A DNA stretch of 64,000 nt, taken from Guillardia theta CCMP2712 (taxonomy: Eukaryota; Protista; Cryptophyta). Position 1 is the first letter of the stretch. The number at the start of each line of letters is the position of its first letter. Positions 9,951 through 61,523 of this stretch are shown piece by piece. The stretch lies in assembly GCF_000315625.1 (NCBI RefSeq), contig NW_005434660.1:104023-168022 (forward strand). Reading direction: 5' to 3'. The notes under the pieces were generated by a model that saw only the letters and a program-made list of their open reading frames with translations, ran no database searches and was not told where the DNA came from. The translations under genes and the position numbers were made by a program.

Positions 9951-10145
9951 CACGTTGGTAGTGGGCGAAGTTTAAATCATCTTTAGTCACTCAAAGTTAA
10001 GTTAAAAAATAGTACGAGGACAATTAGCCGACTCAGCCTGTCGAGGAGGCTTGACCTTTACACTTTTACTCAAAGTTAAGTCAAAAAAACAGTACGAGGA
10101 CAATCATGACATGGCCACTGATACGGCGAGAAGAGAAGAGACAGC
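9951..10145 (+). repeat. Dispersed ~150-200 bp repeat (homologous to 60368-60507, opposite strand) carrying two 39-bp core elements at 9989-10024 and 10065-10104
   Basis: Shares AGTGGGC, ATCTTTA, the 39-bp core, GTCGAGGAGGCTTGACC, ACACT and ACGGCGAGAAGAGAARAGACAGC in the same order with the reverse complement of 60368-60507. Confidence 0.85.
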
Positions 10146-10184
10146 TTGAGTACAGCCGCTTCTTAGTTCCGAGCCCGTGCCAGG

Positions 10185-11718
10185 CTATTCATCGGGGAAG
10201 ATCATTCCCTTGAGACCGAACCATGCTCGTATCTTATCCCTCAGCTTCAGCGCCTCCTCCGCCCAGTAGATCGCCTTGGCCTCCGCCTTGACAGCCCTCT
10301 CTGCTGCCTCCTTGGCGTAAACCTGCTTCGAGCGAGCGTTCTGCACGACTCTGGCGGCTTCTTGGAACTTCTTGTCTGCATGCATCTCGGCCTCTAGCGC
10401 GGGGAGTTCAATCTGTGAGTAGTCGGAGGCGTGGTAGGGGCGGGAGGAGATGTACTGCCCGTGAGTGTACAGCTGAACTTCCTTCGAGTTGGCCCGGAGC
10501 TGCTGGTATGCGTTGTACGTCACTACGTGCCCGTTGAGTTTGTCTCTCGACCACTGCCCCATGTGCTGCGTGCCGTCGGAAGCTCTTTGTATGCCCCACC
10601 CTTCCCTCATCCCGTCCACGTAGCAGCCCTTGTGATACCCTCCGTCAGCTGTTCGGTAGCAGCCGTTGCCCTCGATCTTTCCGTTCACCACCTCCCCTTG
10701 GTAGTAGTCTCCTGCTATCTCCCCGGAGTCCTGTCCCCACGTGTATCTCCCCAGTCCGTTCTTGAGATCGTGGGTCCAGTCTCCGACGAAGCTCTCGCCA
10801 TCCTTGTACCTGAGGACGCCCAGCCCATGAAACTTGCCCTTGAGCCACTGACCGATGTACTCGCCTCCTTGCGGCCTGTTCCCGTTGGGGTTGAACTGAT
10901 ACACTCCCTGCCCTGTGCGCTGCCCAGCAATGTAGCTTCCTCTGTAGACGTCTCCTGCAAACTCTCCTGTGTCGCCATAGCGGTAGACGCCCGACCCCTG
11001 GAACTTACCTCCCTCCGTGAACTCTCCCATGTAGATATCCCCGTTGAACCAGCACAGCACGCCGCTGGTGTGCGGTTGATCCCCCCGCCACAGGCCCAGG
11101 TACTCCTCGCCTCCTCCATCTGGAAATGCAGGTTGTCAGGGAACCAGTTCTAGAGGAAGCGCATGGAGAGTACATGGAGGGTCTGGCCACTTCGCGACAC
11201 CTCTTCCATCCTTCCTCCCTTCATCGTCTCGCTCCCCGTGATACTTGAGGCGAGTCGCCGCCTTGAGCTTGTACAGGGTTGACTCAGACAGCAGCATACG
11301 AATCACTCCTGCCTTGCGCATCTGACGAATCCAATCGGATATTTCAACCCTGCGTGATCTGCACAAGTCAAGTCACTGCCTGGTGAGTTTTGCTCGGATA
11401 TTGCATCAGTTCTTGCAAAGTTCGACTTCGAACGCACCTTTCCCAACGCTTCGGAGGAGGAGGAGCCGGCGTTAGCAGCCAGCGCCAAAACCCGATGTCG
11501 TTCTGCTGAGGGGACTTCTCTCTCCATGACTTCTCGAGCTGGTAGAGGTCAAGCTTGTCTGACTTCTCCTTCTCCAAATCGACGTTCTCCTCACTCGCCG
11601 AACTCTTGATCGTGTTCTTTGACTTGTCCGTGTTGATAGTCTGTCTGGACTCGACCGAGACGTTGAGGACATCAAGGCTGTCGGAGGCCTCAGGAGCGAC
11701 TCTCCTGCTCTTCTTCAT
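10185..11718 (-). CDS. MORN-repeat protein
   Basis: Many YxGxW/FxxGxxxGxG repeats (YIGQWLKGKFHGLG, YYQGEVVNGKIEGNG); acidic N-terminus from MKKSRRVAPE; helical C-terminal tail. Confidence 0.9.
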
Positions 11719-37370: not shown

Positions 37371-37402
37371 GTGCTGATCTTTTAAACTTAACTTTGAGTA
37401 AA
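37371..37402 (-). repeat. 39-bp core element, partial copy
   Basis: Reverse complement reads TTTACTCAAAGTTAAGTTTAAAAGATCAGCAC. Confidence 0.85.
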
Positions 37403-40826: not shown

Positions 40827-42200
40827 GCTTCGGTTCGTTGGGTTCAGATACTGCTAGGTTCAGAAGTTGTTGAGAGCAAAGCTGATGTCGGCTACCTCTG
40901 CATGAGCGTCTGGTGCAGATTCAAAGGGCTGACGGTGAGAAGGAAGCTTCTGTGTATAGTAATGTCTCACAAGGACCAGGACGCTGCTGCCGCCTCTGCT
41001 TGCGCGCTGTGGGAAAGGGGCAACGGAGTTGGGCTGCGATGATGACAAGGGGTGGGTGTACAGGAACAACTACCCCATTTTTCCATGGCACAAGTTGGAA
41101 ACAAGGGGGTACTCTGTACCCTCAAATATGGAAAAGAATATTTTTGGAAGGGATTTTCCTCCCAGAGGAACAATGGGGTAGGGGTACTGAAATACATGGT
41201 CTGAACCATGGTTTAGACCAGTCGATGGGATAGCAGACAAGGGGTCCATCATCAAATCTTCAGTGGGTGGGGCCCATAAAAAAATCTTTTTTTAACCCCA
41301 GCGAAAATAGCTGTTTTGAAAGGGTCCGCAGGGGGCTTATTATGGGCCTCAGACCTTAGGATTAGCTGTCCTTGTCGTTACGCGGCGGTTTTAACCTGAG
41401 TCTGATTTTGAGACGTTGTGATATAGGGAAAACGCAATCAAGTTTCCTTCTAAAATCAGTCAATAATTTGTACCATGACCTTAACTTTTAGATTTTTATT
41501 CTCTTTTTAGTTTATTTTTGGAAGTGTTGGATTAGTAGTGAAACTGAAATGCTTGCACAACGAGCGCTTGCAAGGTGTGCGAGATGTTAGCTTATGCTGT
41601 TGTAGGTGATGTTGCAAGCAAGTACAAGCAGGATGAAGAACAGCTTAATGCGCACGAGGTGTTGCATGGTCCAATTATATTACTCATGTTCTAATTACAA
41701 TGAACACAGGAACAAAGTTAAGATGCAACAAACCATCACACGTACTACTCAGATCCGTCGTGATGGTGTCAGACTCGGTTCTTTCACGAATCCAGGATGA
41801 ATAGGAAGCTTGCCTTGTTGTACTCCCGGAGAAGGCGATATCCATTTGTGTTGCTAAATCTTGTCAATCATGCGTCGAGGCGAAGCCAATGATTGATTGA
41901 TTGATTGATTGCTATGATACAAGTTTACCTCATGAAAACCGTTCACCATAGGAGTCCTCACCATAAGTCTGAAGGTCTTGACATTCCTGAGCTGCCGAGG
42001 CATCAATCCTCTTGTCTCACAATGGGAAGCACGCGACATACAGGAGCCACGGGTTGATGCGCACTCGGAGCATCAGGTCCAAGGTGGTTTGACTCGCTTG
42101 AACGTCCCTCGCGCGGGGGGAAGGGAGAACCTTGAACTCGCAACGGTTGGTAAGCCAAAGGTTATGGTTGTCCAGGGGATTAGCTACTTATTGCTAATTG

Positions 42201-42239
42201 ATTGTCCTCGTACTGATTTTTAACTTAACTTTGAGTAAA
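42201..42239 (-). repeat. 39-bp core element, exact copy
   Basis: Identical (39/39) to 45016-45054 and 60437-60475. Confidence 0.95.
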
Positions 42240-42623
42240 GAGACAGCCCCTTGGCGACCTTTAGCAGGGGATTAGCCCTCCGAGGCTCCGTTTGACTAAA
42301 ACATTTGTACCAGGAGGCTAATCCTAAGTTCAAGTTCTTCCGGTGCCCACTGATATTAAAAGCCCCCTAGTAAACTTTCCAAGTTCCGGCGGCCGCCCGG
42401 CTCAGTTCCAGCCGCTGAGCCTGAGCGGGCCCGCGGCCTTTCTCTCGAGCCGGGAACTTTCACTTCCGAGACTCGGAACAGTGACGGTGACAAGCCTGAA
42501 ACGCGGGCCGGGTAGGATCATGCCAATCTCCGAGCGCAGCCGAAGTTCAACGGTTGGCGGCCGGCGGGGCCCTCGATCAGGTGACTGACTCCAACTGGCA
42601 TGCCACGCTCAGTCACCGTCAAG

Positions 42624-45015: not shown

Positions 45016-45054
45016 TTTACTCAAAGTTAAGTTAAAAATCAGTACGAGGACAAT
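45016..45054 (+). repeat. 39-bp core element, exact copy with TSD-like flanks
   Basis: Flanked by TTTTACCACT (45007-45016, overlapping the first T) and TGTTACCACT (45055-45064). Confidence 0.95.
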
Positions 45055-45269: not shown

Positions 45270-45305
45270 TTTACTCAAAGTTAAGTTAAAAATCAGTACG
45301 AGGAC
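45270..45305 (+). repeat. 39-bp core element, 36-bp copy immediately upstream of the HAD gene ATG
   Basis: TTTACTCAAAGTTAAGTTAAAAATCAGTACGAGGAC. Confidence 0.95.
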
Positions 45306-60168: not shown

Positions 60169-60367
60169 GCTGGGATGCAGCTGTCGAGTACCCTACCCCT
60201 ATTCGTCGTAGCCATTTACTATGAGAGTACCCCCCGTTCTCCGAGCAACCAAATGACCAGGCAGGTCTTTGGCCATGTCATGCCGCGATGCTGGGAGTCC
60301 GGGGCCAGGACAATATTAATCAGTTAAGTTTGGGGGACAGCAGTCGGCAGGATTAGGTTTGGTTCTC

Positions 60368-60507
60368 GCTGTCTTTTCTCTTCTCGCCGTTTGGCCTGTG
60401 CGACAGTGTCAGGGTCAAGCCTCCTCGACTCTCCTGATTGTCCTCGTACTGATTTTTAACTTAACTTTGAGTAAAGATTAATCTTTCGTCAGCCCACTCT
60501 CGACGTC
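60368..60507 (-). repeat. Dispersed repeat homologous to 9951-10145, with one exact 39-bp core (60437-60475)
   Basis: Collinear sequence similarity on the reverse strand. Confidence 0.85.
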
Positions 60508-60630
60508 GTTGGAATGATGATGGGCCAGGGCGGGGTCCGTCGGGCCGGGCCCGGGCGCCGCCCGGCCGGTCGGGCCGCGCGCCGAAAATTCAGAACTTCT
60601 TGATGCGACATTGGCCTGAGCGGCGCTCCA

Positions 60631-60662
60631 TTTACTCGAAGTTAAGTTAAAATCAGTACGAG
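60631..60662 (+). repeat. 39-bp core element, partial copy inverted relative to 60437-60475
   Basis: TTTACTCGAAGTTAAGTTAAAATCAGTACGAG. Confidence 0.9.
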
Positions 60663-61523
60663 CTCGAATCTAGTAATGAGTTGACTAAAATAATTCCTTT
60701 ATGTGGTGTCGGGTAGGGTAGCCGCACCCAAGCATTGGACTACAAGGGTGGGTCCCCCCTGTCAAGTATGGTAGGATTTTAGGATTCCAAGGGGGGTAGG
60801 TGGTTTTGCATGAGGTAGGGGTACTTATTACCCCATGGTTCCACCGGCAGGAGCAAGTTGGGGTCAACCGGCAGGGAAAGGAGGGATTTCAGAGTTGGCG
60901 TGTTTTTTAGTATTAGATATTATAAAATAAAAGCCAGATTGTACTGGAATAATTCTAGGTGGGGGTGAAGCACGGCAAGGAAGGGGGTACTAGACGTTTG
61001 GTGTGATAATCAAGGGGGTGGGAGCAAGTTGGAGTGGGTAGGGGTACAAAATAACAAAACATTATAGGGTACTATAGCCAAAAAATAAGGGATAAAATGG
61101 GGTATACCTGATGTTGGTGTGGGTCATTACTCAACTAGGTGGGTAGTCCTGGGACCGGTGGTGTCACGAGAATGGCGGCGGCGGCATGTAAGGGGGGAGG
61201 CGAGGAGTGAGGATTGGCAGCAGGAGGGAGGAGGAAGTCAGACTGTCAGCGATGAGGACAAGAGAGGAATCGACCGCGATGGCGGAAACCATGCTTCTTG
61301 TGCCACCTGCGTAGGGTTGACGTACCTGACCAGTCCATTGAAGATCCCAGCAGGCGAGCCGAAGACGGTTATTTGAAAGCGGGAGAAACTGTGGGATGAA
61401 CTCGCATCGGATTCTTTCTTGCACGACATAACGCATCCTCCCTGGTCTTGCAGCTCTCCCGTGCTGCTGGTCTGGATCTATCGCATTCCGTAGACCACAG
61501 CTACTCTTAGGCAGAGCGTAACG

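Follow-up and report, generated by a model that had tools for sequence, protein, structure and literature searches.

A probable retrotransposon tail nested within an older tail copy in the Guillardia theta nuclear genome

Two copies of a repeat and the filled site

The stretch of DNA analyzed here (hereafter the window) comprises 64 kb of eukaryotic nuclear sequence on contig 14 of the Guillardia theta CCMP2712 assembly. Its open reading frames (ORFs) encode MORN, ankyrin, TFIIB and protein-kinase domains, GGA-type simple repeats are spread throughout it, and scans of the window for tRNAs and Rfam families returned zero matches. A 39-nt core sequence occurs in it 7–8 times as against 0 in shuffled sequence, i.e., beyond what chance would furnish. 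Two of these occurrences belong to a longer repeat, and the original prediction that one repeat is present both near 10 kb and near 60 kb is borne out, with the copies lying at 9982–10145 and 60319–60475. As set out below, core and longer repeat belong to the 3' tail of a retroelement, and we term their occurrences tail copies. Tail positions are numbered from the 3' terminus of the element in the reference copy L088, natural copies serving as the reference throughout in place of a consensus or repaired element. The relevant features of the window are:

9982..10064, minus strand: older tail copy, 3' part, reference positions 1–71 (from an alignment to 13 other copies and L088)
9982–10024, minus strand: core 1, interrupted close to the terminus by a private insertion of 4 nt
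Within the older tail copy, after core 1: private insertion of 8–12 nt
10065..10106, minus strand: extra tail copy (core 2), 41 nt, starting exactly at the element terminus
10107..10112: filler TGACAT, 6 nt, separating core 2 from the rest of the older copy
10113..10145, minus strand: older tail copy, 5' part, reference positions 80–113, with the 5' truncation at 10145
37374..37402, plus strand: tail copy, about 29 nt; the 7-bp word GCCGGAC is repeated close to it on either side
42201..42241, plus strand: free-standing 41-nt tail copy, with the 12-bp direct repeat GCTAATCCCCTG on each side
45016..45054, minus strand: tail copy of 39 nt, free-standing; target duplication of 7 bp, TTACCAC
45270..45305, minus strand: free-standing tail copy, about 36 nt, adjoining a GC-rich island; no flanking duplication is seen
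60319..60475, plus strand: young 157-nt tail copy with 1 substitution, the "empty" member of the comparison
60315–60321 and 60477–60483: 7-bp duplication of the 60-kb copy, ATTAATC on the plus strand
60631..60663, minus strand: tail copy, about 33 nt; a GC-rich spacer of 155 bp separates its terminus from the facing terminus of the 60-kb copy

Read from the core onward, both longer copies open at a sharp terminus, TTTACTCAAAG..., and pass through the 39-nt core into a common continuation. In the 60-kb copy (60475 down to 60319), the junction within this continuation is uninterrupted, ...CTGACACT|GTCGCACAGGCCA..., whereas in the 10-kb copy (9982–10145) a second core of 40 nt, which had been predicted at this very place, follows at 10065–10104 after ...ACACT. 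The two had been described as a pair of filled and empty sites; this holds as far as a gain is concerned, but the filled site is not a clean one, for it carries 41 nt of tail with 6 nt of filler and is missing 8 nt of the common form (GTCGCACA). Eight positions had been aligned as homologous in the original prediction, of which one agrees, and the approximately 31 nt past the terminus in each copy (9951–9981 and 60476–60507), which it took to be part of the repeat, are only weakly alike, with 10 of 500 shuffles scoring equally.

With about 10% substitutions, the older copy at 9982–10145 is the most diverged of the 54 longer copies that were sampled, and on account of this age the details of its junctions are blurred. 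No clean target duplication flanks core 2: the TGACAT beyond it could have decayed from a second TGACACT, the word to the left of core 2, and would then be the remnant of a target duplication; alternatively, it may consist of untemplated bases or filler. The private changes of the two cores are distinct, with the 4-nt insertion and a C-to-T change of core 1 being absent from core 2, and a T-to-C change of core 2 being absent from core 1.

The polarity of the difference between the two sites is apparent from their frequencies in the genome. For the uninterrupted junction, a 28-nt pattern spanning the site has 234 genomic matches at up to 3 mismatches and 0 control matches. Patterns for the left and right junctions of the filled site, likewise with up to 3 mismatches, find a true match genome-wide only at the window's own site: five other matches to the left pattern (2–3 mismatches) share the terminus half only, and the one viewed in context, L135, lies outside any tail copy. 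At this stringency the genome yielded no second copy with two cores from which the one at 10 kb might have been derived. Thus, with 234 uninterrupted junctions and one filled junction, the extra core was gained at 10 kb rather than lost at 60 kb, in keeping with the original prediction, and it is the uninterrupted form, not one with two cores, that is common among the copies of the longer repeat.

The composite tail copy at 9982–10145 probably lies within the 3' untranslated region of a MORN-repeat gene: the stop codon of a MORN-repeat ORF (10185–11060, minus strand) is about 40 nt away, and the two share the same orientation. Right after the truncated end of the composite copy, at 10146–10155, the window has TTGAGTACA, with 8 of 9 positions matching the inverted terminus of the element; this may be a trace of second-strand priming or a chance resemblance. 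Elsewhere in the window, the 12-bp repeat GCTAATCCCCTG (in the region 42150–42290) lies 25 nt past the terminus and 14 nt past the inner end of the 42201–42241 copy, a placement that may reflect a carried-along flank (3' transduction) together with extra 5' bases.

The parent retroelement and its truncated copies

At 30 loci around exact matches to the core, the sequences upstream of TTTACTC are unrelated between loci, while downstream of the core many of the loci share one continuation over differing distances. A continuation shared over differing lengths indicates that the longer repeat continues the core and does not host it. The 39-nt core is very probably the last 39 nt of a Guillardia theta retroelement, and what had been read as a discrete moving cassette is the 3' end of an element that encodes a reverse transcriptase; core and supposed host repeat together form one 3' untranslated tail of about 160 nt in a retroelement of about 3.65 kb. 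With the core at the 3' end of the element, reading from the core onward follows the direction of first-strand cDNA synthesis.

Over 3645 bp, the long copies L088 and L089 share 99.8% identity, and they carry, on the reverse of the strand that begins with the core, a single ORF spanning at least 1138 codons. The Pfam reverse-transcriptase domain RVT_1 is detected in the ORF at L088:306–3722 on the minus strand (E 4.7e-8; 33.4 bits against a cut-off of 29.6) and also in the relative P0003, and the reverse-transcriptase motifs GVxQGDP and YADN/YLDD can be aligned between the element and its relatives. The ORF's stop codon lies about 160 nt short of the element's 3' end, and the last bases of this tail are the core in reverse complement. 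A repeat search over L088:100–3900 found no terminal direct or inverted repeats, its sole find being one internal palindrome. The terminus reads ...GAGTAAA and is followed by flanking sequence or by up to 4–6 extra bases, without a poly(A) or simple-repeat tail. Several accepted non-LTR clades likewise lack poly(A), and such an absence does not bar membership.

The relatives of the ORF product are few: among 5.8 billion proteins, 5 are related at E ≤0.001, and two of these come from this genome or are near-identical. Over the matching part, the element protein is 100% identical to GUITHDRAFT_110080 of Guillardia theta CCMP2712. The closest solved structure is that of the Bombyx R2 protein (8gh6), with a weak match (E 0.024). 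Neither the N- nor the C-terminal part of the ORF gave a Pfam or PDB sequence match. The C-terminal part contains a Cys/His cluster along with a conserved Asp, Asp and His; in three distant relatives the cluster is not conserved and the Asp and His columns are invariant. An AlphaFold2 model of the C-terminal 284 residues, built from a 4-row alignment, reached a pLDDT of 42, too poor for a fold search, and in this low-confidence model the order of elements is a helix, three strands, a helix and a strand; a search of the ESM atlas with the same region returned unnamed clusters only. The element family itself is poorly known, and literature searches for it in G. theta found no description.

Two smaller observations concern the same element. 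At the active site, YADN is shared by the G. theta element and two of the distant relatives P0003–P0005, and the third has YLDD, the usual reverse-transcriptase active-site motif having two aspartates. In the 5' flank of one long copy (L088:3795–3825), a terminus piece of 9–11 nt (TTTACTCAA) is found between two copies of GGCCTAC, an arrangement suggestive of an extremely short insertion that duplicated 7 bp of its target.

The relationship between the element and its short copies was surveyed by pattern counts over the 87.1-Mb, 669-contig assembly of Guillardia theta CCMP2712, all such counts being lower bounds:

Tail positions 1–18, up to 1 mismatch: at least 1808 copies
Tail positions 11–38, up to 2 mismatches: at least 819 copies (0 for the control 28-mer)
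Tail positions 61–88, up to 3 mismatches: at least 234 copies (0 control matches)
Tail positions about 205–231, up to 3 mismatches: at least 61 copies

The outer end of the copies is sharp and common to all of them, and the inner ends vary. Among 144 sampled copies the inner ends fall at 30 to >390 nt without a step at 39 nt, and once the genome counts are included they range from <18 nt to >390 nt. A further 30 loci, anchored about 220 nt into the tail, lose their likeness at many different points, with 7 remaining alike to the end of the 3-kb loci. The window presents the same picture, its copies having inner ends at about 29, 33, 36, 39, 41, 113 and 157 nt. Hence, of the proposal that the extra core has the same end points as the free-standing cores, the part concerning the outer end, TTTACTC, stands, and that concerning the inner end does not, since the short copies in the window end at about 29, 33, 36, 39 and 41 nt.

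The insertion sites are dispersed, numbering >800 over all the large contigs, with a weak base bias around the nick (C at -1, A at -3 and T at +3). Exact flank repeats of at least 7 bp accompany 20 of the 127 copies, where random pairing of flanks would give 1.0, and repeats of at least 6 bp accompany 33 of them, where it would give 3; their lengths are 6–10 bp, and the window's 45016 and 60475 copies are among those with repeats of at least 7 bp. Most copies show no flank duplication by this strict test, and many copy junctions carry a few extra bases. The shared outer end, the variable inner ends and the target duplications of 6–10 bp together point to target-primed reverse transcription with 5' truncation, and with copies made in this manner 39 nt is not a fixed unit.

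Origin of the extra tail segment

The interruption of one tail by another is not confined to the 10-kb site. At locus L011, a 13-nt tail piece follows ...CCCTGACA and the bases GC, after which the copy resumes with CCCTGACA repeated; at L042, a 22-nt piece follows ...CCCAGACA and TGTA, after which CCCAGACA is repeated. Both pieces start at the terminus, both lie within a few nt of the spot at which the window's tail copy is broken, and both are flanked by perfect 8-bp duplications (CCCTGACA and CCCAGACA, respectively), of the size class of ordinary target duplications. At L133, a 38-nt tail piece directly follows ...ACACTG and the first copy does not resume, the DNA beyond being unrelated. The nested pieces, of 13, 22, 38 and 41 nt, all begin at the exact terminus and end at differing points.

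The recurrence of this break point was gauged by counting junctions that consist of a tail segment, 0–30 nt and a fresh terminus. The census combines exact-pattern counts, which miss diverged copies, with approximately 145 sampled copies picked with a 28-mer:

Anchor at positions 52–61: 11 junctions in about 250 copies
Anchor at positions 82–92: 3 junctions in about 220 copies
Anchor at positions 31–41: 11 junctions in about 800 copies

At least 4 of the junctions after positions 52–61 break at exactly ...CCCTGACA. The break point at reference positions of about 68–72 (CCCTGACAC) is accordingly a hot spot of about 3-fold relative to the neighboring stretches, while plain truncations in the sampled copies show no enrichment at 66–74. 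The fold of the tail RNA, considered as a cause of a preferred stop, was no better than that of shuffled sequences (z -1.08).

As to how the second core arose, we infer a separate event, namely a second, severely truncated retro-insertion into the older tail copy, to which we assign a probability of roughly one half. In such a scenario, reverse transcription would start at the 3' end of the element RNA on a nicked chromosomal site, and early stops would be common, scattering tails of about 10 to 400 nt with a common outer and a variable inner end. The old 113-nt tail copy at 9982–10145 would then have been struck a second time by a copy that stopped after 41 nt and inserted within a few nt of the recurrent break point (CCCTGACAC, positions of about 68–72), with the second event adding 6 nt as filler or as a since-decayed target duplication and losing 8 nt of the target. 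This origin is favored by the nested pieces of L011 and L042, as they carry 8-bp duplications of the ordinary size class, by the commonness of very short copies with duplications, and by the age of the older copy, which has been exposed the longest; the near-collinearity of its two halves (ending at 71 and resuming at 80) fits an insertion into one copy. Against it stand the lack of a clean duplication, since reading TGACAT as TGACACT needs an extra 8-nt deletion, and the hot spot at about 68–72, which it would explain only via an unproven endonuclease preference in an element whose target bias is weak elsewhere. L133, with its first copy not resuming, is also better accommodated by a template jump.

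The chief alternative, less probable but possible, is that the composite copy arose in a single insertion event with template jumps, in which case the core would still be a retrotransposon tail and only the number of events would differ. The enzyme would have dropped off the RNA near position 71 and switched to the 3' end of an element RNA, whether a second molecule or the one it had just left. After 41 nt of copying and the addition of a few bases, it would have gone back to the original RNA about 8 nt beyond the point of exit, and a return so close to that point accounts for the near-collinearity of the older copy. Template jumping and untemplated extension are among the activities documented for a non-LTR reverse transcriptase (PMC8857657). 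In G. theta, head-to-tail junctions (a truncated copy, 0–25 nt and a fresh terminus) are common and cluster after reference positions 52–61, L133 shows the shared break point followed by a tail and then by unrelated DNA, and the short fillers at junctions (G, GC, TGTA and GATTC) resemble untemplated additions. However, in documented jumps the enzyme leaves one template at its 5' end and enters the next at its 3' end, and two of the three switches envisaged here would be internal. Moreover, the identical 8-bp duplications at L011 and L042 would have no obvious cause, whereas staggered nicks predict them, and plain truncations in the sample are not enriched at 66–74.

A duplication of core 1 at the DNA level, by slippage, unequal exchange or break repair and without any reverse transcription, had been offered alongside the original prediction as its alternative, and is unlikely. 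The two cores are just 80 nt apart in the same orientation, both show a lengthened A-run relative to the common form, copies of the family bear many short private insertions, some of which duplicate adjacent sequence, and a tail array with a 51-nt period exists on contig 56, all of which could be accommodated by such local processes. But core 2 and the nested pieces of L011, L042 and L133 start at the exact terminus, a junction that thus recurs elsewhere, while repair would start at arbitrary points; the private changes of core 1 and core 2 are not shared; and the base that precedes the nested terminus of L011 is not the one that precedes the locus's own core.

Least probable, and to be regarded as very improbable, is that the 39-bp core is itself mobile or duplicating, be it as the end of a MITE moved by a transposase or as a tail-only RNA copied as a unit: 39–44 nt is indeed the most frequent inner-end class in the sample picked with a 28-mer, and at L004 a spacing of 34 nt separates two inverted cores, an arrangement reminiscent of a very small inverted-repeat element, but the peak is largely a selection effect (the 28-mer reaches position 38, and about 1000 more copies end before it, 1808 against 819), the inner end is not fixed even among the nested pieces, the full element is without inverted ends, the duplications vary from 6 to at least 10 bp in a manner unlike the signature of a transposase, and inverted pairs with outward termini are rare (2 loci as against 7–9 with facing termini). 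Of the notion that the core was added as a unit, there survives the start at the usual terminus, with the 41 nt and filler speaking for no fixed unit.

Certain other identities for the core were also considered and set aside. An inverted-repeat transposon or MITE, an idea that came from L004, was ruled out by the long copies without inverted ends and by the variable inner ends. A spliced-leader-like or small-RNA gene, suggested by a GT in the core and by tandem relics, does not agree with a junction to downstream DNA that is not at one point, with empty Rfam and tRNA scans, or with the continuation of the core sequence into the 3' tail of the ORF. An introner, suggested by donor-like and acceptor-like motifs in the core, was dropped once the reverse-transcriptase parent was found.

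Affinities of the element and the wider occurrence of its tails

Returning to the separate second insertion and the element behind it, the copies resemble the 5'-truncated, "dead on arrival" copies of non-LTR elements (L1, CR1, R2 and R2-like) in deriving from an element with a reverse-transcriptase ORF and, behind it, an untranslated 3' tail, in having a common 3' end with a variable 5' cut-off and duplications of variable length, and in having no terminal repeats; as in other non-LTR litter, truncated copies vastly outnumber long ones. Unlike typical non-LTR elements, the G. theta element ends in ...GAGTAAA with no poly(A) or simple-repeat tail, its copies are extremely short (about half of the approximately 1800 are <38 nt), and its ORF has no endonuclease domain recognizable by sequence. 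With the R2 group it shares one long ORF with a central reverse transcriptase and about 500 residues after it, along with a best, albeit weak, solved-structure match to the Bombyx R2 protein; R2-group elements have, behind the reverse transcriptase, a C-terminal CCHC motif and a restriction-like endonuclease of the PD-(D/E)XK kind, and the C-terminal part of the G. theta ORF contains a Cys/His cluster, which is not conserved in the three distant relatives. The insertions of R2-type elements are directed at one specific target, unlike the dispersed insertions in G. theta, where just the weak bias at the nick is seen. Sequence comparison thereby offers a lead only toward placing the element in the R2 group. 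Truncated R2 copies and non-site-specific R2-like copies are among those described (PMC7650587), and the biology of R2 has been reviewed (PMC12203849).

The composite copies may also be compared with the chimeras generated by template jumps, of which the L1-U6 chimeras of mammals are an instance. The likeness lies in a truncated copy joined head-to-tail to a fresh 3' terminus with 0–6 extra bases; the unlikeness lies in a join that keeps recurring at a single position inside the tail and in a first copy that resumes at three loci, with an 8-bp duplication at two of them. Like MITEs, the tail copies are short and abundant with one sharp boundary, and one locus has an inverted pair, but unlike MITEs they have a parent without inverted ends, duplications of no fixed length and a variable second boundary.

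Thus, both the core and the extra core are ordinary litter of a retrotransposon of the non-LTR type rather than a new self-moving cassette. This removes a false lead, in that the pair of sites reveals a retrotransposon tail nested in an older tail and no 39-bp mobile cassette. For the annotation of G. theta, it means that approximately 1800 short dispersed matches can be attributed to a single reverse-transcriptase element, of which they are truncated copies. The tail's recurrent break point and the excess of short insertions in its copies may bear on the behavior of such enzymes in vivo, with template jumps and abortive events as candidate activities. That the enzyme very often makes abortive or jumping events, inserting tails of 10–40 nt or bare duplications with a preferred break point in the tail, and is thereby a main source of word-sized insertions and mosaic GC-rich islands, is doubtful; were it true, the element would have a mutational role in the Guillardia theta genome beyond that of ordinary transposon litter.

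Several further patterns were noted among the tail copies. They are rich in private short insertions of 3–28 nt, with 131 insertions, 36 deletions and 238 substitutions over 13.2 kb of aligned sequence, and even nearly unmutated copies have 6 insertions of at least 3 nt as against 1 deletion. Such insertions are found at L006, L007, L019, L024, L030, L041, L056, L071, L079, L103 and other loci, as well as at 10027–10040 and 10118–10122 of the window. Certain words recur in them (CTCAG/CTGAG, CGTG, CACTG and GGCCG), and the GC-rich islands beside the copies hold the same words; some of the insertions are duplications of the adjacent 4–9 nt and some are small palindromes.

Pairs of tails with facing termini, 13–190 bp apart and often with GC-rich sequence between them, occur at 7–9 loci, whereas pairs with outward termini occur at 2. 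The facing pairs include those at 60437–60663 of the window and at L007, L019, L024, L027, L032, L006 and L017, and suggest repeated insertion on both strands of the same small targets. Finally, at 2622–2703 of contig 56, at least 2 successive 41-nt tails are each followed by a 7-nt filler (GCCTGGC/GCCTCGC) and a fresh terminus with a period of 51 nt, forming a small tandem array built from tail copies.
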